Source: Mytilus edulis (lineage: Eukaryota). From it: DNA of 64,000 nucleotides. This document shows, one piece after another, positions 5,806 through 64,000 of the stretch; position 1 is the first letter of the stretch; every line of letters starts with the position of its first letter. The notes under the pieces were generated by a model, which saw nothing but the letters and a program-made list of their open reading frames with translations, searched no databases and was not told where the DNA came from. A program made the translations under genes and the position numbers. The stretch is from assembly GCF_963676685.1 (NCBI RefSeq), contig NC_092356.1, forward strand, positions 63,426,001 to 63,490,000, given 5' to 3'.

Positions 5806-5818
5806 CTTTTAGAAGCAT
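5806..5818 (-). CDS. Coding exon 1 (MLLK+G) of a further paralogue; downstream exons not found in the window
   Basis: cttaccttttagaagcat is identical over 18 nt to gene B exon 1 and its donor, and the flanks are weakly similar. No exon 2 was seen in 1-5800. Confidence 0.6.
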
Positions 5819-6319
5819 TTTAAGCTGATTGTTGTGCATTCTTAAAGATTTAAAATGTCTAATCGATGAAAAAGAAAGCATGTATCTATTGCTTAGTATA
5901 AACTATTTCATGTGTTATAGATATATTGGTAAAATGATATACAAGGATTGTAAAATACTGTCACAACAAATCAAAATTTAATATCACTTGCAACTTTAAA
6001 ACGTGTAATGTTTGATTTCGAGAACTTAAACTTAAACTGACAACAATTGTAACAGTCAATGAAAATGTTTCCATCGGGAGTTACAGAGTGGTGTTCAGAT
6101 GCCGTAAACATGTAATGAAAGAAAATTTATTATGAAATATTGAGCGTCGACAAAATGTGTGCATATTAACCGAAATGTATAAAAGTCAGTACTTCATATA
6201 AAATTAATAATGTAATAAACAGAACAAATATAGAACAAAGCGTGTACCGATGAATAGATAAAGATTGTGATAACTTTGTAAATTGACAAATTTGTTTCGA
6301 AAAAAAATATACCTTTATA

Positions 6320-6941
6320 AACAAAATTTTACGATAAAAGAGATGATTTCAGCTTACAAATTGTACTTTCCATTTCTTAGTAGCAACAATTCAGGAGCAC
6401 CTGCATACGGGCCGGGGTATATATCTCCCAATTGAAGCAATATTCCAGTGCTTGTATTTCTTATCTTGATTTTCTTGATAGAGGGTTGCTGCTCACAAGT
6501 AAGCTGTTAAACCAAAAGTTCCAAATGGGGAAGTTAAAATCATAATTTCGTAAATTTTACTGATGCCATCACAAGTTGGTTGACCGTTATGGAAAAACCG
6601 TTTCACAGATAATATCGGATATGTTTCTCACGTCGTGCCTACAATCCCCTTTCCTTTCGTGAATGTGACCTACAGAATAAGACTATTTACCGGGTATGTA
6701 ATAACATGAGCTACACGATTGATGCCACATGTCGAGCAGAATATGCTTACCCTTCTGGAACACATGCGATCAACCCCCAGTTTTTAGTGGGGTTGGTGTT
6801 GCTCAGTCTTTAGTTTTATATGTTGTGTAATGTGTACTATTATTTGTCTGCCTGTCTTTTTCATTTTTAGCCATGGCGTTGTCAGTTTATTTTCGATTTA
6901 TGAGTTTGACTGTCCCATTGGAATCTTTCGCCACTCTTTTA
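6320..6941 (+). mobile_element. Older 5'-truncated Penelope-like fragment
   Basis: Degenerate homologue of 23126-23731. Confidence 0.85.
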
Positions 6942-8434
6942 TAGAAAATACTTTTTCTAAGTTTTTTTTAAATGAAACTTGTCCACAAGTTATACAATAC
7001 TGTATTTGTGAGAAACTATAATAATTGATTACTACAAATATGAAAGCAAACATAAGAAATTTCGTAGAAAATACTTAAATGTAAGATGATTATTAATGAA
7101 AAATGAATAGCAAACATTTTGTAAATTTATGATACAATTTACATAAATATCTACAATTTTGATTGCTAGATATAATTTAATTATATATATATGGTTCCTT
7201 TGATAACCAATTAATTAATTTTCTATTCAGAAGCTGTTTTTGAGAGTAAATATGACAGAAACGAGACTGATGCCAGATGATCTCTCGAAATCTCTTGCTA
7301 CTTTCAGAGGTTGACGCAAGTTTGTCTTATAACCATTATACTGTGTAGTGATCTTTATCCTCAACTTGATAATGGTTTGGCATTTTTTGAAGACAGCTTT
7401 TCCATTTATGTGATGAACTAAAGTCTATGTAAATAGGTATAACAAACATTTAAACTCATACAAAAACAAGTTCGAAATATTATTGACTTGTAACAGGCAT
7501 TCTTTTTTGAAATTATGTGTTAAACCTGGTTTTATAAAGACATACTACATGTACTACACGACTGACTGAAATATTTAAACCAGCTCACAATTTAATATAA
7601 CATAGACGACATCATAAAATAGGTGCAGTGGATAGAAAAGTTGGCAATGACGTCACGCTAAAAGTTTTTATACATTTTTATACATTCATAATGACTTTAG
7701 TACGGCCTTGCATCCTGTAATGTTATGACATGTAAAGAGTAGAAATTTTTCAAAACTGTTTTGATATCTTTACATGACAATTGGGTTGTGTGCAGAATGA
7801 TAGTTGAGAATCAGGGGGGGGGATATTTTTTAGTTACGATTGACTGCATCATTACTATAAGAAAGCTTTTTTGTGACATAGGGGTTCTTTTCTTGATTAT
7901 TTGATTTGTTGGTAACTGTGAGTACTCTCAAATCGTATTTTGTTGTTAATTCTACCTGTTGTTACTGTTTTTTTGTTATTTTATACTAATATGAATGTTG
8001 TCTATATACCAGCTTTGATTATTTGGAATATCTTCTAATTTTAACTTCTTCGTACAACATCTGTATGAACATCAAGATTATTCTTCTTAAATCTGTACAG
8101 GGAAGTTTTAGCTAGCTCTGATTGCATAGTTTTATCATTGATTTTCACCCTAATTTGTATCTAGTGTTATATTATGCATTTATATGACAGAACTTTCCTG
8201 GTATTCTTAATTATTGGAAAAATTCTATACACATAGTACTATACATAAAACGACAAAGCTATTTTTCATTTACCTGTATATATTACTAAATCCACAGGGA
8301 CTCGGTTAGCAGATTAAAATTTTGTAATTCAATGTTTTTAATTTATTTTTTATTATTTCCTGTCTATTTGCATTACTTTATTATCGTAATTAACGTTGCC
8401 ATCACTATTTCTTTGTTTTCTGGCAATGTGCAGT

Positions 8435-9049
8435 TTACAAAACTTTACGACAAAAGAGATGATTTCAGCTTTCCAATTGTGAACTTTCCATTTCTAAGTA
8501 GCAACATTCCAGCAGCACCTGCATACGGGGTATATATCTCCCAATTGATACGATATTTCCGTGCTTGCATTTCCTATCATGGTTTTCTTGATAGAGGGTT
8601 GCTGCTCACAAGGAAGCTATTAAACCAAGAGTTCCAAATGGTGAAGTTTAAATCATCCCTTCATAAATTTTACGGACGCCATCACGAGTTGGTTGACTGT
8701 TATGGAATAACCGTATCACAAATGATATCGGATATGTTCCTTACGTCGTAACTACAATCCCCTTCCCTTTCCTAAATGTGACCTACCGAATTAGACTATT
8801 TACCGGATTTGTTATCACATAAGCAACACGACGGGTGCCGCATGTGGGGCAGGATCTGCTTACCCTTCCGGAGCACCTGAGATCACCCCTAGTTTTTTGG
8901 TGGGGTTCGTGTTGTTTATTCTTTAGTTTTCTATGTTGTGTCGTGTGTGCTGTTGTTTGTTTGTCTTTTTCACTTTTAGCCATGGCGTTGTCAGTTTGTT
9001 TTAGATTTATGAGTTTGACTGTCCCTTTTGTATCTTTCGTCCCTCTTTT
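8435..9049 (+). mobile_element. 5'-truncated copy of the same Penelope-like family (RT C-terminus and 3' region)
   Basis: Near-identical to 23126-23731 (KLYDKRDDFSFPIVNFPF...MISDMFLTS*). Confidence 0.92.
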
Positions 9050-10789
9050 ACTATCTATATCCGTATGCTGGAAAAATCGTGAAGGGATCTAAGTCGCCAT
9101 CTTGAACTGCCTTCCCTACTTTAGATAGAAAATAATTAAAAATATCAACAAATTACTATATACCTTACAAAAGCACTCATTTTCTTCCGAAATTATTCTT
9201 CTATCACATGCATGTTTTGATTTGTGGATTAACCCTTACGTAGCTTCAGTTGCATTCGTGTCAGAATATTAAAATTTCCCAGGAAAGCAACGTAACTGCC
9301 AAACATGTCGTTTTCAGTATGATAGACGAAATGGGAGATAACTCTTGTCATTCGGAAACTTCCGGGTTGATTTTATGTAATTTATACGTGTTTCTCGTTT
9401 CCGGTTTTTATATAGATTAAACCGTTGGTTTTCCCGTTTGAATGGTTTTACACTAGTAATTTTGGGGCCCTTTATAGCTTATTGTTCGGTGTGAGCCAAT
9501 GCTCCGTGTTGAAGGCCGTACATTGACCTATAATGGTTTAATTTTATAAATTGTTATTTGGATGGAGAGTTGTCTCATTGGCACTCACACCACATCTTCC
9601 TATATCTATATAAAGTGGCTACCATAAACATTATAGACGTTTCATAATTATTCGTATACATTGTACAGCTTGTAGAGTACAGATGGGTTATTGCTATTCA
9701 TAAGATCTTCAAACATTTATGTGTTTGTTTTTTTTTCCAATAGATGCTTCGAAATCATTTGTCTACTTTCGTCTATTGCTGAAATTATATAATACAATTT
9801 GTAGGCTATAACATAAGAACAAATACAATTGACTTTCCATATACATTTTGAAGTTTGCCCTCTTCTATTTTAAAAGGGAATTTTTGTGTTAAAAGTTATA
9901 AATCTACAAAAGGAATCAATATTTTGTCTTTTAGAATATCAATGTCGAAATTCAAACTGTTTTTAATAATAAAAGCGAATATTTCAGAGAATATTCATAC
10001 ATACTTTCATTATTAATACAGTAATCAAAATATTATCACATTTAATAGTAATGAATTAATAACCTTACTGCATGCATGGGGTATATAAAAAAATTGGAAC
10101 AACATACAAGTTAACCCTTTATGAAACAAAGTATAGACAATACATATATCTAAAGACACTGAATGTAAATTTCTAAATATTCCAATACAAGTATTTACAA
10201 ATCTTGACGCATGTACTCACCGTTTCAGAATAACTTGACATGTATGTTTTATAAAAAGTAAAATTACAAAAACACTGAACTCTGAGACAAATTAAAAACA
10301 GAAAAGCCCTAATCTTATTTTCCTATATAGATTCAGTTTTGAGTTCTGCTGACTACTCGAAAAAAAAGCAGTATCATTTGAATTGTGTAAAACTGAATTA
10401 TTTATGCACTTTATAAATTTTAACAACATATACGAATGTTTTTATTACAATAAATCAAACAGTTTTTTGGCAGAATGTTCACTTGTTAATCCCTTTAATT
10501 TGCAAATTGCACATTTCGTTGCAAACTTCGTCGCTTTTAGTTTTGCTTTTCCCGTTTACTGCTAGTAGAAAAGAAATCGAAAAGGTAGATCGGAGTTCGG
10601 TACTTTTGTAATTTTATTTTTCGCCTGATGTGAATTACTGTGATCAGATCGATGTAAAACAGTGTTTATCTAAGTGATCTTAAAATATAGGGAATAACTG
10701 ACTGTCATGCCCAGTCAATTAACTCTTATTTCATGCTTTGTTTCAGTTTATTTTTCCTTTTTTTTTTGTATTTCTTCTTTAGTGCACTT

Positions 10790-10959
10790 CTATTTCTCTG
10801 TGCGCACTTTATTTGTCTTTGAACATTTTTGACAAATGTTGACACAGTCAAATGCTACAAGCACTCCAACAACGATAACAATGCATGCTGTTCCAAATAA
10901 ACCCATCGTTCTTGCTGAATATCTATTGTCCGGCACACTTATTAATGACCTTTTGTGTT
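10790..10959 (-). CDS. Gene A exon 8 (TM helix, tail, stop)
   Basis: 170 nt ending in TAG. Hydrophobic stretch GLFGTACIVIVVGVLVAF. Confidence 0.9.
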
Positions 10960-13900
10960 CTACAAATAAAAAGACATAATCATTATCAATTGAGCATACA
11001 ATAATGTCAGGCATGATTTAACCCTTTGTTATGATAATAAATCATTTAAATTTAATGCAATACAGTATACCGCATTGTCTTCTTTAGTTCAATCCATAAA
11101 TAAAAAAAAACAGAAACTATATTCCTTGTATTTCAAAGCCGGCAATAATGTTACGGCTGTTGTTTTTATAACAACATTAAAAAATTCAAAACGAACGGAA
11201 AACTTTTCAATGTTTGATAATAAAGCATAACTTTGCTTTGTAGTTCAAACTGTCATGCGTATGTTCCTGCGTTACAAAAACATGGACAAATAATTTTCAA
11301 ATGAATTCTCATTATTACAAAAAATATGAATTTGTGATCAATAAAGTATAGCCAAAATATTGAATTAAAATGAACCAGAGCTTAAATAGAACACTACACA
11401 TATATGTTCTAAGTTAAGGATGTACTTAGGTAAGGTGTTGGAAATTTGTGTCAAATGTTCGGTCTTCCTTGTTTCTTTCCAACGAGTAAGGGTAAAATAT
11501 TGTGCCCGAAACACCCATTTGTTTTCATTATAGACTTTTGAAGCTCATGAAAGGATATTTTCCAAAATTTAAGCAGATCCTTGATTTCTATTCTTTCGAT
11601 TTGAGACTGATATAAAGCCAATGCTAATTTAAGGTAAAAGTCCGAGTCAGCTTTTTTCCGCCATGTTTTAAAACTCAAATATGTCAAAAAGTAGCTCCAT
11701 AACCTATCAGTATTTTTAGCTTACGTCTTTCCTTAAAGGAGGGACGAAAGATACCAGAGGGACAGTCAAACTCATAAATCGAAAATAAACTGACAACGCC
11801 TGGCTAAAAATGAAAAAAACAAACAGACAAACAATAGTACAAATGACACAAAATAGCAAATTAAAGAATAAGATTAACTTAACTGATGCTCTTTCAACTT
11901 ATTTTATCAATTTTAATGTCTCGAATTTTTAGATTTCACTTAAGTACATCCTTAAGTGTGCGTAAAGCAGAGTCAATGCCTAAAGGCAAAATTTAGTCGA
12001 AATTGTATGATACATCGTTTTCCCACTACGTTTGTAATCATTTAGAACTCGTTTAAATGTATCTGAACTCCGACATATGATATGTATATAAAAAAAGATG
12101 TGGTATAAGTGCCAATTAGACAACTCTCCACAAGAGACCAAAATAACACAATTAAATAACTATCGGTCACCGTACGGCCTTCAACAATGAGCCCATACCG
12201 CATAGTCAGCTATATTATATAATGTATGTAAAAGAGTCAACATTTCACTTTTGATGCCATCAAAATTGAACAGACAAAATCTACTTGTTTTTCGCATGTT
12301 CGTAAATTAGGATTATAACGACAAAATAAGCTGTCGGTTTCACGCTACAAAACGGCAATTTGTTTCAGTTTACTCAGGTGTATAAAAAGAGAAATGTGTA
12401 AACCAATAACGAACTATTTAAAAACAAAGTGTTCTAGTGGGGGTTCTGGGAAATCGAGATTCAAAATACTGATTTTTTAAATATTTTCAACACATTTATA
12501 GACCTATTTTACAAATTGGATATTGACTACAAATATATTTTCTATTGTATTGTATACTAGCTACATAATCATTTAAACATTCAGATTTCTGATTCAACCA
12601 AATCTAATAGATTTCGGAAATATTGGGAACTTAAATATTATACTTTGCCTTAACCTTCTAGTTATGTAACCCTCTACACGATTAACAATGATGCCTGACT
12701 CGAAATAAATACAATCAAAGCTTACTATTAGTTTCTTTCTTACTGACAACCAGCTCTTTCTCCAGTTTCTGAATTTTTTCTTGCAGGTTGGTCTCTGGTT
12801 TAGTCGTGTTACATAACTTGTAGCAATAAATGTTATAACCTAACTGAACAGGGGTGGAACACATATCAGTTTGCTGAGTTAACGGCTGGCATGTCCATGA
12901 TTTAACTGATAAAAATTCATAAAAAGCATTTGATTAAAGATAATTAAGAGCAGAAACATGCACCATTAACGTTTAGTTGGTCCCTTAAAACAATAAGATA
13001 CAAATACACAATTCATAAAATGACGTTAAAAAACATCGCAATGGTTGTTCTTTTTTTACTTGAATTGATACAATTTCTTATTACATTGGTTGCAATGAAT
13101 TACATTGATCTCCCAGTTGAAAAATAAACCCAAAAATTTCACATGTGAAATAAACGTGGTTATTTCACTCTCTGACGTCATACAACAATAGGCGTCGTCA
13201 AGACGTCGATAACGGCGGATCAAAACAAATGGTGAATGCGTAGAAAAAAGATATAGTTCCTTACATGTTTTACATTAATTTAAAAAAAAAGCCATTTGCC
13301 AATGTAATAAAAAGATTAATTAATTAAAGAATTCAAATATCGAAAATTTTCAACTCGTGACCGAACAACACTGAAAATTAACTCATGCGCTTCGCGCATT
13401 CGTGAAATAATGTGTTGTTCGGTCACTCGTTGAATATTTTTCTCTATTTGAATTCTTCGATTAATTATTCTATAATTAACCTAAATATTCATCTATGACT
13501 CTCTAGATTATATCCAAACATCTCATGATAAAATGGCGGAATTATTAAAGTTTTAACATAAGGTTAAGTGCTGTACCCCAATTTTGAACATCTGAATCTA
13601 TTACAAACGTGTGTTACTTTTTTGCCACACATTGTTGTCAATATAATAGAATTTAATATTGTGACTGTCATACAAGAGACAGCTATCATGAAACAAGGTT
13701 TAATCCATCGTAATCTACATAAGGAAATGCCTGTACTAAGTCAGGAATATAATAGTAATTTTCCATTGTTTTGATATATTTTAGATTTTGATTTTGCTAT
13801 TTGTCAAAGAACTTTCTGTTTTGAACTTTCCTTAGAGATCGATAATTTTGTCATTCAATTGTTTTTAGATGCTACCGACAAAATTAAAATTATCTGATAG

Positions 13901-16900
13901 CAAGAAATATTATGATCCATAAAAGAGTTGTATTCCTTGAAGTCGCCCGTTCAACAAAATACCAAGTTACCAACTTATACATCTCTATGACTTACTCTTT
14001 ATTGACTATACTTATAATACTAGTACATACATTTGACAAATATCGCCAAAACATGTGCTCTGTTCCCTCCTATGTACACTGGAAATAGAAACATTCTGAC
14101 TGTTTACGTGATGTCTACGCACAGAATATAAAAAGAGTTAACTTTATTTTCTGAAAAATCAATTATACTACACAGCATGTAGTCAATTTTCTTAATCTAA
14201 ATAAGTCGCAAAAGATTGTTAAAATGATTATGCAAAAAAAAAACAAAACAGTCCAATCAGCAGCTTTCAACCACCAAAGTATGCTAATAAAGATATTTTG
14301 AATAAAATGTTTTAATTTAGTAAAAAAAGTCATCCTGGTAATTTTAAACATTTCTGTTTCCTTTATAAAAGTTATTTACTATTTTATTGATTCTTGTAAG
14401 ATCATTAAGCTATCATCCAAGAAAAAAAATGAAAAAGATGTTTCAGTTTTGAAGTCCTTTACTGTTTTGTTAACATTAATAATGGTATACGTACTTTCAT
14501 TGTATGACATATATGTACTTGTTGGACTATAAAGCAACACCAGTTTATCATGTGACTCGTACGAACAAACAAAAGTTCGTCCTTCGGAAACAAGCAACCA
14601 ACCAGCATCCATAAAACATCCTCCCCAATTATTGTTCACATAGAAACGTCTTGGGGAATAGTGAGACCTGTTTAAACAACAATACTGCATATGCTGTAGA
14701 CATCAGGTATCATGATCTAATTTTCTTTTAATCACTACCGTATATGCAAGTTGCAGTTAATATCCCATATTTCGTTATCTCTTTATCTAAATATTTTGTT
14801 CTGTATATCATTGATGTATGTCTATTATCGACATTCATTGAGAGAAACGTAAAAAAAAATAACGTATTCTAATGCAATTTGGATGTAACAATTTTGTTCA
14901 TTAGCTAAAAGTTGCCGTCAAATCCACAGTTGACCAGGCGTAAATAAGGAGGGACCCGCCATTTTGAATTGATTGAATCAACAAATGTTCGATTACTACT
15001 ATATAATCGAAAATAAAACATCACCTACCTCGAATTTGGCGTTTTGATGTACTTTTATCCAAATTTGAAGCGTACGGGTAACGTGATAACCTCCAGTTTG
15101 TAAGTTTTCATTTGTATGACGTAACGTTTAGCCATGACGTCTTTGTGCCAAAATAGTTCATGAAGTTTCGCGGATTTTTTTCTATTAGTCAAATTTTGAT
15201 GTTCTTTTTGAAGTTTTTTCTTTAGAATCGGAATAACAGTACTGTAGTTGAAGAGTTGACACCGTCAATTTTAATTTGACGATTGCAAATCTCCATTTTA
15301 CTGTCTCCGCTACGTGTCGCCAGTAAAACTGCATTTGCGACCGTCAAATCTACAATTGACAATGGCAACTCTTCAACTACGGTACTATTATTCCTTAATT
15401 CGCCTGTCATTGGATGGATTTCCATTGTTTTTATAGTTTTAAATCAATATCAAGTGTTTAGTGTACGCTTTTGAAAATATTACCCAGATTGCATTATATT
15501 CTGAAACGGTGAATTGACATTGTTCACACTTGTATGTAAAGGAAGTAATCGTTTTTGAATCTAAGTTCAATCGACGTTTAATACTTTTACTTGACTGTTT
15601 AATATGTTGATTGGCAATGGTTTCTTCTGTTACTGTCAACAAATTGCATTTTAAGAATATTGTTCATTCAACTGTCAAACTTCTACATACGTTGCATAAA
15701 CTTTTAAACATCACTTCAGTAAAAAGAAAAATGACAAAAATACAAAACTCCGGGCAAAATTCAAAACAGAAATTCCCTGGTGAATGGCAAAATAAAAAGC
15801 TCAAACACGTCAACCCAAAGGAAAACAGCTGCTGCCATAAGCCTGACTTAAAGAGGGACTTTATAACTACAATCACGGAGAGCTAATGTTTGCAACGTAC
15901 ATATATTTTGATATTCACATTTGGGTGAATAGGTATTCATATTCTATGATAGTTCTTATAAAGTGTTAAAATGAACAAAATTGAATGTAAGTAAAACCCA
16001 AATAACAACGTTCCCAAATGAATAATATTTTTAACATGTCTGTCCATCCGTTTGGTCGTCCAGCCGATAATCCTAGTCTTGTCATCACAACTCAACTCAA
16101 CCACATCACATAAATACACGGAACCATGTAAATAACAAGGACATACTATTAAGATGTGCAGATCGACATGACAATATTATTCAACGGGTTTTATAGGAGT
16201 GATATCAATTTCAACAAATAATTTTGGACTAAGTTTTCTTATGCATCAGCTTATCATCGCAATTTCTCTAAAACCGCACAAGAGAAATGTGTGAAACCTT
16301 ATAGATAATAATGACATGCTAGGGGTTCTCTAATTCAAAATTCAAAGTGTAATCCAAGTGTTATCGCTGTTTGAAATTCATTAATCTATTGAGAAAAAAC
16401 AAATCCGGGTTACAAACTAAAACTGAGGAAAACACATCAACTATAACAGGAGAACAACGACGCAACAGAAACACTAAAATGCAACACACTCATAAACGAA
16501 CTTTAAGATAACAATAGCCATTTTTCTAACTTGTTACAGGACATTTTAAGAAATAGTGGATTGAACATGGATTTGTGACTAGACAAACATCCCGCTTTAA
16601 TAACAATGTTAAAATGACATCATTACATGACATGACTACAATACAAAATCATTATAAGTCATTAAAAGTTTTTCTATGTGATATTTGTTTAGATTTCTAT
16701 GATGAATCTTTCCTTACCCTTCAATAGAAAAATAATAATTACTCCCATGATTGGCCGTCTTTAAATCTGAATAGGAACTATTCTGCAGCCTCTCTTGACT
16801 GAACCAGTTCGTCTTGTCTGTCCCAGTTCCGTTAAAATCGAGAAAAACTCTCTCCACACCATTTTGATAAACAACTACCTTTACCTACAAATGTGGCAAA

Positions 16901-27000: not shown

Positions 27001-27247
27001 GAAAAAGATGTCATGAGGGAATTTTCATTTTGAAATTTCATTTGGGTTCAATATTTTTTGTCTTTTTTTAAATTATTATAATGGAAAAGTAACATACAAA
27101 TTGCCCGCGTATTGTACTCGATAATATATTTAAGATGCATGTAGAAATATGGTCATCTTAGCAACACCAAATGAATAAACAACTTTTAACGTCGTGCAGT
27201 TTCATTTGTTTTGTTCTAGTTGATTCCTTTTTTTTTGTACTGCAATT

Positions 27248-27417
27248 TTATTTCTCTGTGCGCACTTTATTTGACTTCAAACATTTTTGACAGATGTTGA
27301 TGCAGTCGAATGCTGCAAGAATTCCAACAACAACTGCAATACATGATGTTCCAACTAAACCCATAGTTTGTGATGAATATCTGTTGTCTGGGGCACTTGT
27401 TAATGATCTAATGTGTT
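27248..27417 (-). CDS. Gene B exon 8 (TM, tail, TAA)
   Basis: 170 nt after a GCAG acceptor. Confidence 0.9.
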
Positions 27418-42338: not shown

Positions 42339-42339
42339 T

Positions 42340-46716: not shown

Positions 46717-47958
46717 TCCTGGTACCTTTGATAACTATTTACACCACTGGGTCGATGCCACTGCTGGTGGACGTTTCGTCCCCGAGGGTATCACCAGCCC
46801 AGTAGTCAACACCGCGGTGTTGACATGAATATAAATAAAGTGGTCATTTTTATAAATTTCCTGTTTACAAAACTTTGAATTTTTCGAAAAACTAAGGATT
46901 TTCTTATCCCAGGCATAGATTACCTTAGCCGTATTTGACACAACTTTTTGGAATTTTGGATCCTCAATGCTCTTCAACTTTGTACTTGTTTGGCTTTATA
47001 AATATGTTGATATGAGGGGTCGTATTTGAGTTTTTTTTGTGTACTGGCTAGCCGGACCAGTTGACTGAAAACTCTACTGGTCCGGCTCCAAATCTACTGG
47101 TTCTGCAAAAATAACATTTATTTGACAAACACTAATATAAATGATAGATGTTTAATTTTATTTTGATGCTTTCGTTTACATAAGTTAGACAGGAACAAAG
47201 GGATAGTCTTGGTTATGATTTTGATAAAGGCTTTGATTATCTCAATGATTTTCTTTATCTAAATCAGGATCAAGGACAGAAAAAATATCAACATTGTCTT
47301 CCACATCATCGCAATCCTCACGACGACCATATGGTGTCTGACTGGGTCGTCTAGGGCGCTGTCCAGAAATATTCCACATTTCAATAGCCGGGACCGGATC
47401 AAATGATGCTTTATCTTCAGTGTGAAACATAATGAATAAAAGATCTGATAAAACAGTTGGACGCAATTTTGATCGCGAATCATTCTTCACAAGTTTCATC
47501 TCAGAAAACCCTCTTTCTGCATCAGCAGAATGAGCAGGAAGGGAAAGAATTAAATCCATAAGTCCTTTTGATTTTCACTTGTTTTATTTTTTTGTCCGGT
47601 GGATTAACTCCTTCCAAAAATTTCCACATTTTATATTGTTGTGAAGGACGCTCACCCGAGATATTAATTAACTTGATCAATTGTAATACCCCCAGTACCG
47701 TGTAATTGATTTCACAGGTAAATTGTTTTGTAAACAAACGGAGATTGCGATGCAATCAGTGATTTTTATCGACAAATTTCTACTGGTCCGCCGGACCACC
47801 AGCTGACAAAATCTACTAGTCCGACGCACATTCTACTAGTCCCGGACCACCGGACCAGCGCTACTTTTGACCACTGATTACTGTGACGAGTCTTATGTAG
47901 ACAAAACGCGCGTCTGGCGTACTATATGATATAATCCTGGTACCATTGATAACTATTA
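46717..47958 (+). mobile_element. Retrozyme-type repeat (~360-bp monomer) with a type I hammerhead motif, split by the hAT element
   Basis: Terminal direct repeat tcctggtacc(t/a)ttgataactatt. Degenerate HHR ...TGACGA-GTC-ttatgta-GAC-aAAA-CGCGCG-TC-tggcgt at ~47880-47920. Confidence 0.75.
47016..47876 (-). mobile_element. hAT transposon deletion derivative (hATC dimerisation-domain remnant)
   Basis: ORF 47242-47559 LILSLPAHSADAERGFSEMKLVK...RSKL; CAGTGGTC-type terminus; subterminal ctactggtccgg/ccggacc motifs. Confidence 0.85.
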
Positions 47959-51000: not shown

Positions 51001-51441
51001 TTATTGAAGATACTGATAAAGATTGTGAAAGATCTGATGCTTATTGAAGATACTGATAAACATTGTGAAAGATATTATGCTTATTGAAGATACTGATAAA
51101 GATTGTGAAAGATCTGACGCTTATTGAAGATACTGATAAAGATTGTGAAAGATCTGACGCTTATTGAAGATACTGATAAACATTGTGAAAGATCTTATGC
51201 TTATTGAAGATACTGATAAAGATTGTGAAAGATCTGATGCTTATTGAAGATACTGATAAAGATTGTGAAAGATCTGACGCTTATTGAAGATACTGATAAA
51301 CATTGTGAAAGATATTATGCTTATTGAAGATACTGATAAAGATTGTGAAAGATCTGACGCTTATTGAAGATACTGATAAAGATTGTGAAAGATCTGATGC
51401 TTATTGAAGATACTGATAAAGATTGTGAAAGATCTTATGCT
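48042..51441. repeat. Minisatellite, ~85 copies of 40-bp GCTTATTGAAGATACTGATAAAGATTGTGAAAGATCTGAT
   Basis: Directly visible head-to-tail array with variant units and a 678-bp higher-order duplication. Confidence 0.98.
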
Positions 51442-53090
51442 ACGAAAACTTTCAAATCGTTATCTTATTAAAGGATAATTAATACTTTTGCTTGATACAT
51501 GAAATACTGGGTTTTCATTATTCATTCTGTCTCTCTTCTGTTTGTGAAAAGGTCTTATATCGTTCAAATCCAATTGATCTAATTATCTTATAACACCACC
51601 AACCAGGTGTTTTATAGCAGAATCAGTCTATTTATCCGTCCTTCGTCAGTTTTGATTTCCTAAAAATAAAAAGAATAAGAATAAGAATAGAATCTAATCA
51701 CCTAAATTGCAGTTCAAACTGTGCATCGTGCACTATTGATCACGATAATGTCTGGTGCACTCTTTGTTATGTCAGCGCGGCAATTTAATTTCGCGATTTT
51801 CAAATGTGTATGATGTAGTGAAATAGGGAACAATCCGAGTTTTTGAGGTATTCGCGACGTTTTACATTCGCGTTATTATATACTCTCGAATATCCAAAAA
51901 TAAAACGCAGGGAAATTTTTCAATTTGGTAAAAGCTAAAAAGCATCAACCGTTCTCAGTCATGCTGGTGTTAGATGAAAACGACAACACTCCAAGAGAAA
52001 GGATTGAAGTAAATTCCTTATAATAATCATGACTCTTTCTTAAAGGTACACGTTTAGTTTTTAAATAAAATTTCGGTCTTCATAAATTTAACAAACTAAT
52101 ACAAACTATGATGATACATATAAAAAAAAGAAGATGTGGTATGTTTGCCAATAAGACAACTCTCCACAAGAGACTAAATGACACAGAAATTAACAATAAT
52201 AGGTCACCGTACGGCCTGCAACAATGAGCAAAGCCCATATCACAAAGTCGGCTATAAGAGGCCCCGAAATGACAATTCAAAACAATTCAAACTAAAAAAC
52301 TATACCGAATATTTTGTTCTAGATCCTCCAAAAATATATAAGTATATTTTCATAACTTTTGTAACTATTCTATAGATTTCAGATACACTTTTTAAAGGTA
52401 AAAAGTGTATATAAATGTAAGTGTAAATTCTGTTCAGGTGTTTCAAAGTTTAAAACGCAAATGGCCTTTCGAGTTACAGGTAAAAAAGCACATACGTCTT
52501 TTTTCTCTCTGGTCGCGCATTGTCTTTCACGATCACGTTGATGCATTGCCTGATCCCTCTGGATCAAATCAACAATATTAGATGTTGCCTAAAACAAAAT
52601 AAACGTTTTCAAGAGGAGAACTTTAATTTTACTTTACTATCTTGCACACCAAAGATTCAGTTCAAATATATCATTATATATAGAAATGTGACCATTGTAG
52701 GTACAGAACGTGTTTTTCTTTTCTTTTTTTTTTAACGGACCTCGTAGACTTATGTTGCGCCTTTTGTGTTTTCTTTGAAAATACTGAATATTTCCTTTAT
52801 CTTATTGCAAAGTATTATTGAAAAAGGTGTATCATTTTGACAGACAGATTTGTTTCTCGTTTTCAAAGTACAGCAGATTTGACACAGATAATGTAGTAGA
52901 ATTACAATTAATTACATTCACAATCCGTAACAAGATCCTTCACGATACGATCGCAATACTTGACCACCGTTAGGTATACTTTCACGATACATTTTCCAGA
53001 TATACCGAATGTGGTTTTCTCTAGCAACTTCCTAACATCTAACCATAACAAGCGTTAAATTTGTTACACACCACTCCTGTTTCAACTATA

Positions 53091-54296
53091 CTAGAACACA
53101 CCCGTGATATCGCGGGTCCGTGACTGAATTCAAGTATACAACTATGCGTATGCCTTATTTTAGTATTGGTATTGTCATCTGATAAAGTCATGCCGATTAT
53201 AAGATGCCCAGTTTTCTCTGCTTTCAAAATCTTTCGGATTGAACCCGACAACCTGGAACCCATCAGTTATTGGTAATATTAATTGAAAACAAAAGGGCCT
53301 GGAATGGAGTATTTTTTAATCAATAGCATTGTTCAATATAAGTTATAAATATAGTTGAATTCTTTGATTCGCTGTTTTACGTCATGCCGGCTTACAAATA
53401 ATTGAAAATTGTACATCTTCTTTTTTTATACTATACGCCTTATTTTAAGTCCAGATTTTTAGTATTCGTATTGTCATCTTAGAAAGTCATACTGATTAAA
53501 ATACTGCAATAGGGAGAAATGTGACAATGATTGAATTTAGTAGTGTCAAACCTTTGATGATGACCCGTGTATATAGCAAAATTCTAAATACACCGTTTAG
53601 TGGTGTGCCTGTCAAATGCGGAACGTACAGATAAGGTAATAGGTAACAGGTGAATATACTATTGGTAACGGTATCGGATTCGACCCTGAACTTGTTAATT
53701 ATTGGCAATATTAATTAAATGGAAAAACAAAAGGGCCTGGAGTGGTGTAATTTTTAATCAACACCATTGTCCTATATTAGCTATATATAAAGTTGAATTC
53801 TTTGATTTGTCGTTTTTACCCGATGACGGCTGATAAATTGGACCTCGTTATTTTAGTATTATAGATACGCCTTATTTTCAGTCCAGATGTTTAGTATTCG
53901 TATTGTTATCTTAGAAAGTCATACTGATTAAAATACTACAATAGGGAGAAATGTGACAATGATTGAATTTAGTAGTGTCAACCCTTTGATTATGACCCGT
54001 GTATATAGCAAAATTCTAAATACACCGTTTGGTGCTGCGTATGTCAAATGCGGAACGTACAGATAAGGTAATAGGTAACAGGTGAATATACTATTGGTAA
54101 CGGTATCGGATTCGACCCTGAACTTGTTAATTATTGGCAATATTAATTAAATGGAAAACAAAAGGGTCTGGAGTGGTGTAATTTTTAATCAACACCATTG
54201 TCCTATATAAGCTATGTATAAATTTGAATTCTTTGATTTGTCGTTTTTACCCGATGACGGCTGATAAATTGGACCTCGTTATTTTAGTATTATAGA
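53091..54296 (-). mobile_element. Non-autonomous Helitron with a tandemly duplicated ~431-bp 5' segment
   Basis: 5' TC(TATAATACT), 3' hairpin ACCCGCGATATCACGGGT then CTAG, inserted between A and T. Units 53435-53866 and 53867-54297 are near-identical, with a degraded partial unit at 53145-53435. Confidence 0.85.
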
Positions 54297-56609
54297 TACC
54301 AGTTTCGCACTAATTAAAACAGTATGAAGGCAAACCAAAACTCGAAAATGAAGATAATTACATGTCAAACATTTACAAAGGGCCAATACGACTCACACAA
54401 TCCATTCCTGAGGTTACTCTGAATTATTCATATTTCATGAACAACAAATTAGCACACAATTAACATATCAGTGGTAAGTAAGATTTTTTTTATGGCTTTG
54501 GTGTTGATACATGTAACAAGGACTAGTTGATATGTAAGATATACGTTACAGTCTTGTTTCAAATTCCTACATTATGTTCATTTGACAGTGAAGCACGTTC
54601 TTTAAACATGATAAAGATAACATCCAAGCGACAGAATTTTAAACAATCATACTGTTATTGTTCAGGAAGTGTGAATCACTGAAAGGCTTGTTTTATTTTT
54701 CAAATCCTTGTTGTTAGATGTATTCCTATTTTTATCCATCTGATGAATAAAGCCTTTTTTAAATGAATTTAAAAGTTTTTTTCCTATTTTGTACAGTTAC
54801 ACCTAGTGTTTCCCATATCACACAAAAAGGGCATGGTAACTGCAATGAACAGGAGCACCTAGAGCACCCAAAAGGGGACATCGGTTATGATAAGAATTAA
54901 AAAAAAGAAATGAATGGTTATATTGCATTGGTAGAGTATGAACTGACAGTTGTTGATGGAATCAGAGCTCAAGATAGCAATCAATAAAGGTGTAATGTTT
55001 TTCATTTTTTTCATTTTTTCAAATCTCCCGCCTGTCCAAAAATGCTGTATTTATATTAAAAAGGTCCCTGTTAATATACAATGCATTACACTTTTATCAT
55101 TAATTTATATATGCTAGTACATATGTTGGATAAATGTTTTCTTAAAATTTAAAAGTTAAGGTAAAGCTCATATGGAGGTGCTCCTAACTGAAGGAGGATT
55201 ATACTAAGAAATATAAGTTTACTTCCAGTTTACTGGTTTACTAATTTTACATTACAAGAAAATTAGTCGAAGGACCAGTTTAAAATCTAGGAATTAAATC
55301 CTATATAAAATGGAATGGTGTTTTAACAAATAAAAAAAATCGAAGAATTTTAAAGTATTTAAAAAAAGGAGTCAAAAAGGGCCTGTCGTCATTAAACAAT
55401 GCTAAACATATATTGGGGAACACTATACAGCTCTTTCCAATAGTAGTAGGAGGGTGTTGGTTTCAAACTTGTTTGAGCCCGCTTTATTCTTTGTGTGCTT
55501 GTTGTGCTTGTCCGAAGTTAGAAGCATGTCATATTGGTTTTTGGTTCATTATTTTGAACATCACAAAGGCCATTAGTTTTCTAGTTTGAATTGTTTAATA
55601 TTTGTCATTTCGGGGCCTTTTATAGCTGATTATGTTACCTTTCCTCGTCATGAGAATCTACAGTAGTACATAGTACATGATATTTTATGCATGAAGATAG
55701 AATTGATTGCAGATTAGCTATATTATCTGTCTTAAAGGAACGTAAGATGCAGTCATAGACATAACTACGTCTGAACAAGTGACAACTCTACGACAGATCT
55801 AGCCTTTGGATCACAAGTGAAGGTAATACACGTCTTTATTTCTTAAATTATACAATGAGGTTAAGATGTGTTGCATACAGAAATAATAAATAAATATCAA
55901 TCAACGTTACAAAACGAGGTAAACAAATATTTAGACAGTATTTAAACCCTATTTGATACAAAGTACATAAACTGCATGTATCGTTAGTCACAGGATGCAA
56001 ATGTCTGCTTATTTTAATAGGTGCACTTATAAATAATGATACTGATGTTCAAACATTTGTTTATAATCACTGGACATGTGATTTTGTTTTTTTCATTTAA
56101 AGTCAGTTTGAGCCAACTGTCCGAAAAAAATATTGTTTTAAAATTGTGTACAACTGAATCACCCATGATAAGCATTTTTTTTTTTCTATATCAAAAATGC
56201 CAATATACATGTACCTAGAAATGTGATCGAAATTTAAAAATATCTGTAATATTGATACTAAAAAGAAATACTAATGACTTTTATATCATGTGTTTTGTTC
56301 TAGTTGATTCCCCTTTTATTTTGTTAGTGAATTCCTAATTCTTTGAAGTCACTTTATTTGTCTTTGAACATTTTTGACAAATGTTAACACAGTCAAATGC
56401 TACAAGAACTCCAACAACGATAACAATGCATGCTGTTCCAAATAAACCCATAGTTTGTGATGAATATCTGTTGTCTGGGGCACTTGTTAATGTTCTTCTG
56501 TGTTCTAGAAAAGGAAATACAGATTATTTATTGAGCTTACTAAATTGTCAGTTATGAATAAATCCTTTAGAATGGGAACAGCTCGAAGTAATTAAATCAA
56601 AAATAATAT

Positions 56610-56876
56610 TATATAGATATAGGCAGATGTGGCGTGAGTGCCAACGAGACAACTCTCCATCCAAATAACAATTTATAAAAGTAAACCATTATAGTTCAAT
56701 GTACGGCCTTCAACACGGAGCCTTGGCTCACACCGAACAACAAGCTATAAAGGGCCCCAAAATTACTAGTATAAAACCATTCAAACGGGAAAACCAACGG
56801 TCTAATCTATATAAAAAACGAGAAACGAGAAACACGTATAAAGTACATAAACAAACGACAACTACTGTACATCAGA
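56610..56876 (-). repeat. Abundant dispersed repeat family (other copies at 9375-9610, 12085-12215, 31615-31785, 32065-32250, 33455-33563, 34225-34575, 52118-52300, 63590-63970)
   Basis: Shared core gatgtgg..tgagtgccaatgagacaactctcca...gtacggccttcaaca. Confidence 0.8.
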
Positions 56877-59800
56877 TTATGGTCTTTTTCATTGTGGTTT
56901 AAAGTAACAAATTGCACTTACATACACTACTGATGTTATAGCATTTAGTATAAGTTTGATAAAAACATGATTGACATACACACCCAACACTTAAAATTTC
57001 CGAAGGAACAATAACTTAAAATTTCCGAAGGAACAATACCTAGCTTATCTTAATTAATTGAAACAGCTGTGCAGGTGAAGTCAACTTTGATAATCTTACT
57101 TGTAGTCTGAATCGAAATTTATGAGTAGATACTTCAATTTAGAGTTATATCTATTTAGAACGGCGGCCAACTTGAAATTCAAGTGGAGATGCATTCTAGA
57201 AGCTTGCACTCATATATTCGTATTCTGTTAATAATTAATTATATCGTGAATTAAACAACCGACAATATTGGTACGTAATTTGAATAAATAAAGGTAGTTA
57301 TGATTCTCCATGGAATTCTAAAATTTCAAAATTTGATTGATTTGTGAGCAAAGAGAATCACAAAATATAAAATTCAAACGCAGGAAAAAGGTTTTTAGAG
57401 AACCAAACTTACATATGTTTTAAGTAATTGTATTTTGTTTAATTTTTGATAATGCACTTAATTGGGTTTTTTTGTTTGTTCAACAATAAAAACGAGCACA
57501 GTAACCTCAATAATATTTTTATATCGTTAAAAAAGGACATGTTTATAGTAATGCAATATTATTTTTAAAAAGGTGTTCAAGATGGAGTTTTGAGATATAG
57601 CTTTTCAAAATAACACAACATAAATTTCGCTGATTTCTAAACTTTTTCAACACATTTATACACCTATTTGATACATTCGTTTTTGATTGTAATATGTTTT
57701 ACTGGAAGTATATTAGCTTCATATACCATTTGAATATTCATATGACGTTCAACTGTTTCTGATGCATACAAATCAAATAAAACTCTGAAGTATTAGGAAT
57801 TAACATGTACATATCATACTTTGCCATGAACATATATGAAAATGTTTCCCCAACAATGATATAATAATGTAAGACTCAAACTATTGACAATTAAAGCTTA
57901 CTATAAGTATCTTTCTTACTGACAACCAGCTCTTTCTCCAGGTTTATCTTGCAGATGGGTGTTTGTTTCTGTCTTGTTACATAACTTGTAACAATAAATG
58001 TTATATGCTAACTGGACAGGGGTTGAACATATATCAGTTTGTTGTGTTAACGGCTGGCCTGTCGATGATTTAACTGAACAAAATTTAAGAATGAAAGTGA
58101 ACCAGATGCCAGATATTTAAGACATCCCACTCGATTCCTAGAAACAATGTAATGTTAGTACGCAACTCAAAAAATATCTTCGGATTACATCGGCAAACTT
58201 TAAAATGTTTAAACGTGTGTACTTGTATTGACCAAATAGATAAGACTAGTATCTATTGAGTCATTTTATAATCCCTCTCAATTTACTATCCAAAGCTCCT
58301 ATGATAAAATGACGAAATGATCAAGTTTTAACACTAGGTGAACTGCTATACTCTGTTTTGCATATGTTTACCTATTATATCAATTTGATTTGCTCACATG
58401 CATTTCTTCGGTTTTACTTTGTTACACTGATTTGTTTTCTCTCAATTGATTTATGACTTTTGAACTCGGGTATACTATTATTGCCTGTTTTAATGCAATT
58501 CTGTCGACGTTAAGAAATGCCGGTACCCAGTCAGAAATTTGAGTTTTTTTTTATAATTGTTTAATGTGTTTTAACTTTTGATTTTGACATTGTTTTAAAG
58601 AACTTTCCATATTCGATATTTTGATATTTTACATTTTGCATTTGTATTTTCGGTTATTGTTCAAGCTTTCTTTAATGATTTTTTATAATTGTTTTCATTC
58701 TGGGGGTTTTGTGCGCTAATTATACGGTATAACATGTATAAGTTTCACCTATTACTGGAGGTCAAATGACGATCTGTTGTTGATCACAACTTCATTTATA
58801 TGTTTGCAATTTACGAAGTATCCTACCGTAATGGAATTAAACAATATTTTAGTATATTTTATAAACACATTGAATTTCACAATTAGGATTCATAAGCAAG
58901 CATCAAGTGCTTATATTATTAATTCTGTCTCCTACCATGGGAAGCCAAAATATGACCAAGCAAAAGTTAAGAAAAAAAAAAACTGAAACACGAACAATTA
59001 TATTTCGTGACTTATATTTCTATCTCCTTATTCACTTTACAAATAATAGAAATACATACATTTGACAAAGACCGCCAACACATTTGCTCTGTACCCTCCT
59101 TGGAACACTGTAAATAAAACAAAAAAAAAGTGTTATCATCTTAATTTACTGAAATACGAATTATAATACAAACCGCGTCTTGATTTCCTTAACTTATTGA
59201 AGGAGTTAAAAGTTGATAACATATTTGGCCAAAACAAAACGTCAAGTAAGTAGTAAACTTTCGATCACAAAGTAACAACAGATGCAAATAAAGATGTCAA
59301 TATCTTGAACTAAATGTATTAAATCAGTAGATTAAGAAATTCTCGTAACATTAAATATATTTGTTTCCTTTACTTTTTATCAAAGTAATTAACTATTTCA
59401 TGTCACGTAATATTGTCATTTTAATGTTATATTTAACATTGCTATAAAAGCAGGAGGTTTGGCTAGCCACAAAACCAGATTCTATTCATCATTTGTTTTT
59501 TAAAATGTCCTGTACCAAGTCAGGAAAATGGCCATTGTTTTTTATAGATCTTTTATGTGTGTGTTACATTTGGGTGTTGTGTTTCTGTTGTGTCGTAGGT
59601 CTCCTCTTTTATATGATGTGTTTCCCTCAGTTTTAATTTGTAACCCGGATTTGTTTTTCTCTCAACCGATTTATGAATTTGGAACAGCGATGGAACAGAA
59701 TAGAAACTTTTGTTAACTGACATGTCATACGATTAATGTTAAACAATGTACTTATCAGCTTATTATATAATTGATCAATCACAGTTACTTTAAATTCTAT

Positions 59801-60105
59801 CAATCGCATGAGCGTTTAATGTTTTGTGATGATTTTTTTTTTTTGCTGGCAAGAAACGCAATTTCAAAATGAGGTTATTGAATATATGTATGTCTAACTT
59901 TCGCATTCAATATTTTCAAAACATCTCTGAATGTAAAAGGGATTTATTGTTACAAACATTATAGGGTTACCGGATTTCACTCCCGGTTTTTAGTGGAGTT
60001 CGTGTTGTTTCTAATTTTTTATTTATAACTGTTGATGTAAATGTCCTTTGTTTTTTTGAATCTTTGTTTACTCTTTGGTTTTGATTGTTATTGTCTTACA
60101 TTTGA

Positions 60106-60158
60106 TATATATATATATATTATATATATATATATAGATATATATATAGATATAGATA
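60106..60158. repeat. Imperfect (TA)n microsatellite
   Basis: Directly visible. Confidence 0.9.
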
Positions 60159-62220
60159 TTGTAAAGGAGGGGCAAAAGATACCAAAGGGACAGTCAAACT
60201 CATAGATCGACGAAATCTACAAATGTGGCAAAGTGAAAAATTTACTAAGCTTACATTGATGTTTTATTATATAATTATTGTACCTCGTAGGAATATTATT
60301 GGTGATAGTATATTTTTAGCATTAGGTCAGTAGGTGTGTTTCAAACGCAAAGTTATTAGCAGAGTTACGTACCTTTCAGAAAGTAAACAGGTGTGTGTAC
60401 TCCAATTAACATACATTGTTAATATACACATTTATAAATCTAAATCGATACATCTCCGCACTTATGAAGTATTATCATTTTTAATGAAAAGCTCTTATGC
60501 AAAAATGCAATGTTTGTGTAGTTAAGATTACATGGAAAACTTGATGTATATTTTCCTTTTGAACTCATGAGTAACATGGAACATGTTGTGAATAGGATGG
60601 CTTTCTATATAAATTGATATGTTTATGTTTTGGTTTGGTTTGAAATCAGCCGTTTTTAATAAATTGCTGAAGGTCCAAGCTTCTTTTCTCCTATCTAAGG
60701 GAGTAAGATAATCGTCTTATATTGTTGATTTGCGTCTTTGATACACCATGTTTAAAAATCCGATGACAATGAAAACAAAATTGTATGGATTCATTGAAAA
60801 TGGAATTCATTTTTTTTTATCCGGCAGTGAAGTGAAAAAAAACAAAGAACAACACTCGGGGACGTTCTCTGCAATTAACATAAAGATTCGAATATACGGA
60901 ATCGAAGAACAAAATCAAACACTATTTCCCCAAATTTAACAGAGGGATACCATTGCAAATGTGTTTAATGTATTTAACCAGCATTTTTGAAAAATTGTAT
61001 ACAATCACATGGAAATTATTTCTCCTCTTGGCACTGATAAGAAATTGAGGCTAATAAATAAATGGTTGAACAAGTCAACCCGAGATCAAAGAAGACAATT
61101 TTTCTTCATCAAATAAACTTTTACTTGTGTATTTTTCCCTAATGATAGAAAGTGTTTGTTTAAGTAGTCCCTCAATATATCTAAAGAATTACAATGTATG
61201 CTTAGCCATGCGTTTTATGTTTTTAAGTTGGTTTAATTCAAACTAGTTATTCGAACAATGATAAGTTTTGTATGCATCCCGAAGTATTTAAGGGGAATCT
61301 GTACTATTAATGTGTGGTGGTATCTCTGTCAACGATAGGTATATGCTTGCTTGTTGTTCTACGTCATATATTGTTTATATGCAAACTTGCAATTAAATAA
61401 TATATGTGTAAAAAACACCAAGCCGGGGTTATGACACCAGGTTATCCAAAACCTATCCGAATTATAAATTATAGAAACTTAGCTTGAGATAAAAAAAAAA
61501 CTTTAAAAAAAACTAGCTAAGAGTATTTGCTAAAACTGGAACTGCAAAATATATCATTTGCTGATAATCCTTGACAGATAGTAAGACTTATATTCCGAAG
61601 CGTATAATCTGGGACTAGTACACTGTGTTATAGAAGTCTCAGGTATAATGCACAAAACAAGGTATGTTGTGTACTCTTAAACTAAGTAAGGGGGTATTTT
61701 TCTTGAACCTAAATGTGTTAACAGAAGTGATCCGTGTGGTACAGCGGAATTATTACTTCAGATGTGATAGTACGCACAAAAATAATATGTCTAATTTGGT
61801 CATTGGAAATGCTAACCCTCATATTTGTATTCGATTTAAGTCGTAAATCTAAGATATTTTGTAATCAATTAAGGAAGCTTAAACGAGACGTAGATCCATT
61901 TAGATATGATTGTTTTTTTTTCTTTATTTCACAAATGAACAGCTGAAGTAGAGACATATAGGTAGTCACGCTAAGTTGGAATTCCAAATGCTATTTTACA
62001 AGTTTCCCGTTTTAAATCAATATTGTAACAGTAATGATGACGAATTCCCATAACTGTCCTAGAACATTTACAATCGAATTGAAATATAAATCTGTGATTT
62101 GACGTCGTTTATGTTCACAATTTTGAGGAAACAGAAAAAGTTAGAAATCGATCTGAATTAATTCACATTAGTTTCGGAGGTTTCTTTCTTTCTTTTTGTT
62201 TTAAATACATATTTAAGTGT

Positions 62221-62398
62221 AAAAGAGGGGCCAGAGGGACAGTCAAACTCATTAATCGAAAATAAACTGACAACGCCATGGCTAAAATTTAAAATGACAA
62301 ACAGACAAATAATAGTACAAAAACACAACATAGAAAACTAAAGACTAAGCAACACGAACCCCACCAAAAACTTGGGGTGATCTCGAATGCTTAGGAAA
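62221..62398 (-). mobile_element. Penelope-like 3'-terminal fragment
   Basis: Reverse complement of ~23550-23730. Shorter pieces lie at 11735-11875 and 60162-60216. Confidence 0.8.
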
Positions 62399-64000
62399 AG
62401 AGGTTTGAAATATGTATCATTTTTTCTAAAATGTAAATTCTGACGGATATATATACATAACGGAACTAGTATAATATGTAATATATGAATATGATGTTAA
62501 AAAACATGTTTACAAATATTTCATCAAAACAAAAAGCCTTCGTCAGTGTTTATAATTGTATTGCTGATAGAAAATTATTTGAAAAAAATCAGAAACGATT
62601 GTTACGATAGCAATCCTATTGACTAAACAATTCTTACCTGATCAATGTCAATTATCGACCAATAATTTATAACATCTGACTTGAAATGCTTGCCGTTTGG
62701 TTGAGTGATATTTTGAGCTTCGTTGTTATTAATATTGTAGGTGATCTCGCTGTCCATATACAAATTATATATATCGATATTGCTGTCTTCATAAAAAAGA
62801 AAAGAAAATTCAAAATTCTATAAATGCAACATATTCGACAATCACAAAAGTAATTATAAAAAAATGAGTATTGTGTAAAATGACTAAAGGAAAGTGATTA
62901 AATATATTCTTTCTTTTCTTTGCATTATGTTAATACTTCCTTCGTTTAAATACAAACTTGTATTATATTGCATTTGGTTTAAGTGAAAGTGATAACGCAT
63001 TGCTATTCACCAATCAATAACTACATAAAAATAAGGCAATAAGGTTCAATAAAAAAAGAGGAAACAATGGAACATTGCTCACCACCAAGACAAAATAACC
63101 TTATTGGAAAATGGCCATTGTTATAGTATAATTCGTTTCTGTTTGTGTCACATTTTAATGTTGTGTTTCTGTTGTGTCGTTGTTCTCCTTTTATATTTGA
63201 TGCGTTTCCCTCAGTTTTAGTTTTTAACCAGGATTTGTTTTTTTCTCAATCGATTTATTACTTTCGAACAGCGCTGCGGTATACTACTGTTGCCTTTATC
63301 TAATTCAATATTTGGTACTTCATTTTTATGTTCTCAGACCTTTTCAAATTTTAAGTCTTTATTCTCTTGGTTTTTGTGAGTATCCAATGGAGTTTATTGC
63401 ATAGCACAATAGTTATCAAAGGTAACAGGCTTAAATATTAAAACAAGTGTCGAGCGAACAAAAATGACTGTTTTACTTTTACTAGAAATGAGTACCTGAT
63501 TGATGTATAGATATTATTGATAGACTGCAGAAAAACAGTACCCACCTTCGAACACAAGTTTCCAATCCTCCGCAGCTAAGTTACAATTAGATATAAAACA
63601 ATATGGTATGAGTTTCAATGACACAACTCTCCATCCGAGTCACATATTTTTAAAAGTAAACCATTATAGATCAAAAGTACGGTCATTAACACAAAGCCTT
63701 GGCTCACATCGAACAGCAAGCTATAAAGGGCCACGAAAAATTACCATTGTAAAACCACTCAAACGGGAAAACCAAAGGTCTAATCTATATAAAAAACGAG
63801 AAACACTTATGAACGACATCAACAAACGACAACTAACTAACATCATATTCCTTACTTGGGACAGGTGCAAACGATTGAAGCGGGTTTAACGTTTGAATGG
63901 TACCAAACCTTCACCCTTATCTGTAACAATAGTGTAACATCACAACATAGAAAGACCCACTATAAAATATAAGTCTAGCTATATCGATATTATCTTTTAA

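Follow-up and report, generated by a model that had tools for sequence, protein, structure and literature searches.

FIBCD1 has been described as a tetramer that acts as a transmembrane endocytic receptor for chitin (PMC9994688, PMC10825690). It is a type II protein, in which an N-terminal transmembrane helix is followed by a coiled coil and a C-terminal fibrinogen-related domain (FReD) of the canonical PF00147 type with an acetyl-binding pocket. Intelectins (e.g., human intelectin-1, PDB 4WMQ) are secreted, Ca2+-dependent proteins of ~280 aa and so far chordate-centred, and PF00147 is also the domain of the fibrinogen-related proteins (FREPs), ficolins and tachylectin-5A. Here, we describe a tandem array of minus-strand genes in a 64,000-nt stretch of the Mytilus edulis genome (assembly GCF_963676685.1, contig NC_092356.1; C13:63426001-63490000 of the 1.37-Gb genome), which is AT-rich (~31% GC) and is referred to below, at its full length, as the window. 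The products of these genes are type I single-pass membrane proteins of ~330 aa. On balance, we consider it probable that these tandem Mytilus proteins carry a deeply divergent FReD/intelectin ectodomain, likely to act as a ligand-binding globule at the cell surface, that they are tethered through a short tail, and that the cluster has been shaped by duplication and decay.

The mussel proteins resemble FIBCD1 in being single-pass proteins that would present one fibrinogen-type globule on a coiled-coil-containing stalk, with a short cytoplasmic part. However, their orientation is the opposite one (signal peptide, domain, stalk, C-terminal transmembrane helix), and they possess neither the fibrinogen A-subdomain nor a PF00147 match. 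The mussel domain has no sequence match to intelectins. It would belong to the same superfamily as FREPs, ficolins and tachylectin-5A, judging from an A-subdomain bridge in its relatives and from the predicted fold. PF00147 FReDs are also much expanded in this genome (at least 99 exon matches), but have no detectable profile similarity to the mussel domain body, and the mussel proteins differ from them by their anchorage through a C-terminal transmembrane helix. Another group for comparison are bacterial proteins with the NCBIfam domain NF040941 (P0023 and P0018, and on partial evidence P0004), whose body following the 46-residue NF040941 part is clearly homologous to the mussel ectodomain. 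In contrast to the mussel proteins, they retain the YCD...GGGW segment, are large secreted or surface proteins with several domains (TIG, PKD, Big_9) and have no eukaryote-type stalk, transmembrane helix and tail.

Gene B (27248-35897, minus strand) is the intact copy of the array. Exons were identified by eye in three-frame displays, and frames and codon counts were verified by script. The gene has seven coding exons, all bounded by GT-AG, with entering phases 0,1,0,2,1,1,1 and 330 codons from ATG to TAA. Exon 1 (35795-35897) contains the ATG, a hydrophobic signal-like N-terminus and the W.LVFK strand, and ends in phase 1; exon 2 (34956-35104) carries the motif HFKSDVIN.W, exon 3 (31832-31998) the series VKVVVY ... 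TDKTNWFS ... SSYSDLK ... FS.EG, and exon 4 (31146-31321) the series RRF..N..WGGC..DAGWLLV ... C.YE ... LYSP together with an internal donor after 31203. The final strand of the domain, A.VLA.FVK, is encoded by exon 5 (30756-30803). Exon 6 (29930-30109) encodes the stalk, i.e., a 4-Cys segment and a short heptad helix, and exon 7 (27248-27417) encodes a juxtamembrane segment, the transmembrane helix, the Cys-rich basic tail and the stop codon. A preliminary description of this DNA quoted a series of motifs, and all of them were found, where expected, on the minus strand. The eight exons that it gave to each gene are seven coding exons by our count, and the lengths of 326 and 327 aa that it gave for genes A and B have to be corrected to 329 and 330 codons.

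The order of the protein parts is as had been described: a hydrophobic signal-like N-terminus and a domain of ~190 aa are followed by a 4-Cys segment and a short heptad helix, and then by a transmembrane helix and a Cys-rich basic tail. The transmembrane segment in exon 7 has a Kyte-Doolittle hydropathy of 2.3-2.6 over 19 aa and is followed by the basic tail. The cytoplasmic part comprises about 15-20 residues with no recognisable signalling motif. Exon 4 encodes two cysteines and exon 6 four, another four lie around the boundary of membrane and cytosol, and the predicted ectodomain has five N-x-S/T sequons in B and four in A. Queries of the homology searches were single exons and, in place of the joined gene models, database proteins, mainly P0034 (M. 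californianus LOC127710920). The AlphaFold model of full-length P0034 has a compact domain at residues 21-213 (predicted local distance difference test score, pLDDT, 80-95), then a small hairpin and helices at residues 250-274 and 290-318, the latter being the transmembrane one. The stalk exon 6 has seven matches genome-wide, the six strong ones all on C13. The idea that the cassette of stalk and transmembrane helix is broadly shared with other ectodomains was rejected in view of these seven matches.

Transcript data were placed on the region of gene B exons 1-6, using assembled contigs of two runs (X1 and X3, with two organism labels) and two raw RNA runs. Spliced contigs with GT..AG joints were found in both X1 and X3. 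The joint of exons 5 and 6 (30109/30756) is exact in contigs of both runs, and that of exons 2 and 3 (31998/34956) is present in an X1 contig and is exact after the +4 shift of the tool. The joints of exons 1 and 2 (X1 contig) and of exons 3 and 4 (X3 contig) lie within alignment ambiguity. Between exons 4 and 5, both contigs that cover the junction (from X1 and X3) use the internal donor CAA|GTAACA, so that the last exon base is 31203 instead of 31146, i.e., 57 nt upstream. This keeps the phase, and 19 residues are lost in frame, including the conserved LYSP strand. The junction of exons 6 and 7 lies outside the stretch given transcript data and is supported by annotated homologues with the same residue join. 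Four junctions of gene B were thus seen as modelled here (exons 1-2, 2-3, 3-4 and 5-6) and that of exons 4-5 with the internal donor. Gene B is transcribed and spliced at a low level. Gene A has no GT at the place homologous to the internal donor of B.

A ~60-nt element in intron 5 of gene B (window 30418-30478), of which a second copy is located at 29701-29761, is very abundant in the RNA runs, with a contig word depth of about 25,000-28,000 and hundreds of raw reads, each of which lies on it only in part, the flanks being variable. The element is thus a dispersed repeat that is transcribed; an Rfam scan of the whole window, this element included, gave no match.

Self-comparison of the window revealed three paralogous minus-strand copies, A (10790-20477), B and C (56341-63591), of which B is intact, A has no start codon and C is a pseudogene. 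The seven exons of gene A (20375-20477, 19712-19860, 16718-16884, 14495-14667, 14031-14078, 12726-12905 and 10790-10959) are homologous to those of B, come in the same order and have identical phases and GT-AG boundaries throughout. All 329 codons are open, but AAT stands at the position of the initiator ATG of B, with a stop codon in frame upstream of it, and exon 2 contributes the first Met, residue 45. This internal Met is the annotated start of the nearest database protein of A, VDI51648.1 of M. galloprovincialis. The closest database proteins come from M. galloprovincialis, M. coruscus, M. edulis and M. californianus. The minus-strand tandem array of the preliminary description, with its common intron phases and its one pseudogene, is real, and of the two genes that it calls complete only one is so in this assembly. 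Besides the first exons of A and B and a remnant in C, the window contains no sequence similar to exon 1, the two extra first exons claimed earlier were not found, and no family-related sequence was found at 5806-10700.

The flanks, which were fetched for this purpose, extend the array. A complete-looking minus-strand copy, the counterpart of VDI51647.1, lies to the left at window coordinates -10912 to -2832, and a divergent minus-strand copy to the right at 71206-76350, so that with the flanks the array comprises at least five members over about 87 kb. Genes A and B have a ratio of nonsynonymous to synonymous divergence (dN/dS) of 0.34 at a synonymous divergence (dS) of 0.47, i.e., they have been under purifying selection after duplication. 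The dS values of single exons spread about fourfold, from 0.19 to 0.82 (0.19-0.20 for exons 2 and 6, ~0.8 for exons 1, 4 and 5), which suggests patchy gene conversion inside the array.

The domain itself belongs to a large family. The genome contains at least 62 matches to exon 3, clustered on C13, C5, C8 and C6, and 11 to exon 4. With only seven matches to the stalk exon, the membrane-anchored architecture is thus a small subfamily within a far more extensive family of domains. Further clusters related to exon 3 are located at C13 63.90-64.06 Mb, C5 1.1-2.7 Mb, C8 85.07-85.27 Mb and C6 33.0-33.3 Mb, most of them without the stalk exon. These clusters probably represent other architectures built on the same domain; for molluscs, ESM Atlas indicates PAN/Apple-linked forms. 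With exon 4 as the query, an exhaustive HMMER search gave 28 representatives, and homologues are present in Mytilus spp., Pomacea, Elysia, Plakobranchus, Batillaria, the hemichordate Ptychodera, the amphioxus Branchiostoma and Myxococcota (profile-search rows from the repetitive ENA proteins P0015, P0021 and P0027 were disregarded). The amphioxus relative combines the domain with EGF, fn3 and ZP, and other relatives combine it with Sushi, TSP1, SUEL, C-type lectin or PAN. The family had been described as unnamed, and this holds: it has no Pfam or NCBIfam model, the names in databases are all "uncharacterized", and literature searches found no paper describing it. A weak match to DUF7922 in an amphioxus homologue was followed by a whole-genome search, which gave nothing.

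The connection to fibrinogen-related domains comes from these relatives. In P0023 and P0018, which are metagenomic proteins and bacterial by domain content, a canonical fibrinogen A-subdomain joins the family body without a linker, and in P0004 (Myxococcota) and the EGF-bearing P0151 such a subdomain stands just upstream of the family-body match. In all four proteins it matches PF00147 positions 4-62 and NF040941 (YCDxxxxGGGW). PDB sequence matches of this subdomain are to tachylectin-5A (1e-7), tenascin, fibrinogen beta, collagen C-propeptide, FIBCD1 and intelectin; the match of P0023 to 4wmq is confined to this part. Local alignment places the mussel strand DWKLVFK under GGGWTMVAK. P0034 has no NF040941 match, and the mussel proteins begin at the strand that follows the YCDxxxxGGGW subdomain. 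Downstream of it, the motifs NWF, FS..G, R.FF.N..YGGC..D.GW, C.WE and A.FV+ are conserved from bacteria to mussels, and family-wide conserved residues are (in P0034 numbering) R142, C153, D156, G158, W159 and a Cys near 167-170. The idea that GGC..DAGW is the FReD motif NCA....GGWW was dropped, since profile alignment with hhalign gave it no support.

As to predicted structures, the seven top structural matches of two independent models are all to FReDs and intelectins and cover 148-173 of about 195 residues, with Z scores below 8; intelectin-1 (PDB 4WMQ) is only 6% identical to the model. Structural neighbours in ESM Atlas comprise clusters auto-named "Fibrinogen C-terminal domain-containing" (TM-score 0.84) and PF00147-bearing proteins of Myxococcota (TM-score 0.56), and UniRef gives the fibrinogen C-terminal domain name to two Pomacea members. 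Matches to TLDc, a fold known from V-ATPase regulators (OXR1, NCOA7 and TBC1D24), were found as well. They always rank below the FReD and intelectin ones and align fewer residues. Furthermore, TLDc proteins are cytosolic, whereas the mussel domain follows a signal peptide, has sequons as well as a conserved pair of cysteines and is accompanied in relatives by extracellular modules. The family has a sequence link to the fibrinogen A-subdomain and none to TLDc. A TLDc-like ectodomain is therefore highly improbable.

Several observations weigh against a fibrinogen-type domain displayed by working surface proteins. The mussel domain itself has no Pfam, NCBIfam or PDB sequence match. PF00147 does not match any window exon at E<=10, nor the Mytilus homologues P0001, P0002 and P0010, and a PDB sequence search with the family profile gave nothing relevant, intelectin included. 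Foldseek searches of PDB and BFVD gave nothing below E 0.04. An hhalign comparison of a family profile, built from 56 domains and beginning at the W strand, with five single-exon canonical FReDs of the same genome resulted in a probability of 0.4% and an E value of 0.15 over 18 columns, but the FReD profile was shallow (effective number of sequences, Neff, 2.7), and this negative is accordingly a weak one. The Ca2+ and acetyl-pocket motifs of the fibrinogen type look absent by eye, and the conserved residues do not reproduce the D-x-D Ca2+ motif; because the pocket motifs were compared by eye only, the ligand chemistry of FReDs is not transferable to the mussel domain. As to expression, the only transcripts of B seen encode a protein without 19 residues of the domain core, and depth on the B exons was zero in the raw RNA data (two runs, of which 6% and 18% were read), i.e., expression of B is low or tissue-restricted.

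The negative results of hhalign and Foldseek would also be expected if the ~190-aa body were an independent domain, which merely adjoins the YCDxxxxGGGW module in some proteins and whose likeness to FReD and TLDc reflects a common beta-sandwich with helices; its function would then be, e.g., protein-protein adhesion or matrix binding, in keeping with its occurrence in matrix- and adhesion-type architectures with ZP, EGF, TSP1 and Sushi. However, the GGGW strand leads directly into the family body in P0023 and P0018, and the mussel W.LV strand is homologous to it and therefore part of the domain. The consistent FReD/intelectin identity of the best structural matches in both models, over most of the residues, also speaks against an independent domain. 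Moreover, intelectins are likewise a fibrinogen-like domain set apart from ficolins (PMC9434060). We regard an independent domain as improbable. A FReD/intelectin-like fold is the best-supported reading; the structural support is moderate and not decisive, and the fold of the domain body is to be read accordingly. The fibrinogen-related/intelectin fold suggested in the preliminary description thus gained from the continuity with the A-subdomain in relatives and from the alignment of W.LVFK with GGGWTMV, whereas Foldseek and hhalign did not support it. Taken together, it is quite likely that the mussel domain belongs to the fibrinogen/intelectin superfamily.

A further-reaching possibility is that, next to classical FReDs and intelectins, the ectodomain forms a third, ancient and so far unrecognised fibrinogen-superfamily branch, which Myxococcota and marine invertebrates have in common and which has a conserved site of its own (R..FF.N..YGGC..D.GW ... 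C.WE). The stalk and transmembrane helix, as a type I anchor specific to Mytilus, would turn it into a molecule for surface recognition. We put this forward tentatively, being inclined to doubt it. If it is true, the ligand chemistry would differ from the recognition of acetyl groups or diols.

The state of the copies raises the question whether any of them yields a working protein. The window could be a decaying edge of the cluster, with the function residing in paralogues (in the left flank and at C13 63.90 and 69.39 Mb). The AAT that gene A has instead of ATG, the retroelement 150 bp upstream of this gene, the use of donor 31203 with deletion of a core strand in both covering contigs of B, the zero exon depth in the raw RNA runs and the multiple lesions of C would all fit. 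Nevertheless, the frame of B is fully open over its 330 codons with consensus splice sites, and contigs conceal minor isoforms, so a full-length B message may exist alongside the short one. The A/B dN/dS of 0.34 also argues against decay of the whole window, and an open frame through all the codons of A would be unlikely after long neutral decay. We therefore consider a window devoid of working copies unlikely, if less so than an independent domain, and retain the view that the array encodes type I surface proteins with a divergent fibrinogen-type ectodomain. The locus itself is an ordinary case of tandem duplication and decay, and the "birth and death" invoked earlier fits a set of copies in which B is intact, A lacks its start and C is wrecked.

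The retroelement (20631-23439, plus strand) begins ~150 bp upstream of exon 1 of gene A and contains a 417-aa open reading frame without a family match and a 320-aa open reading frame with a reverse-transcriptase match. Its insertion may have removed the promoter or the 5' end of A. Copy C (56341-63591, minus strand) consists of a remnant of exon 1 (63547-63591), exon 2 (62638-62786), exon 5 (59060-59107), exon 6 (57906-58073) and the last exon (56341-56504). Exon 1 is cut to about 45 nt and has a 12-nt deletion, its 5' half being replaced by a dispersed repeat. Exons 3 (VKVVVY) and 4 (WGGC) are missing, and the stalk exon 6 carries a Cys>Gly change and a frameshift. Exons 2, 5, 6 and 7 still have splice sites.

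The repeat in exon 1 of copy C is one copy (63506-63592) of a dispersed element of ~87 nt, similar to a miniature inverted-repeat transposable element (MITE) or short interspersed nuclear element (SINE); other copies are located at 9523-9608, 33479-33563, 56614-56699, 12085-12169, 31611-31702, 52115-52206 and 3428-3512. Between genes B and C, the window contains a 40-bp satellite (48042-51441; about 85 copies, 93% matches) with a strongly positive GC skew (0.29-0.43), a 432-bp unit repeated 2.3 times (53281-54299) with an identical 72-aa minus-strand open frame in each copy, and a remnant of the C-terminal dimerisation domain of a hAT transposase (47242-47559, minus strand; PF05699, E 4e-5).

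How these proteins may work can be outlined from the comparison with known systems. The full form of the domain, as in Myxococcota and some EGF-bearing proteins, would start with the YCDxxxxGGGW subdomain, which the mussel proteins would have lost, so that they begin at the W.LVFK strand. By analogy with ficolins, intelectins and FIBCD1, the short stalk would display a ligand-binding, probably glycan-binding, globule at the cell surface, and the chains may oligomerise. The short Cys-rich tail is a candidate for palmitoylation and may serve in tethering, endocytosis or signalling via partners, but would not signal autonomously. The cluster would evolve by duplication and decay, leaving B intact, A without its start beside the retroelement and C wrecked.

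The survival of bivalves rests on recognition molecules encoded in the germline, among which their expanded lectin families have a central part; a role of the present proteins in immunity or chemosensation, as oligomeric lectin-like receptors of the kind proposed in the preliminary description, is conceivable. The domain family, abundant in the mussel genome with its at least 62 exon matches, also occurs widely among marine invertebrates and in some bacteria and escapes Pfam; a likely fold can now be given to it. Its membrane-anchored form would be an analogue of vertebrate FIBCD1 with reversed orientation. Binding of glycans by the domain through its own conserved site, if it occurs, would widen the known range of fibrinogen-type recognition.

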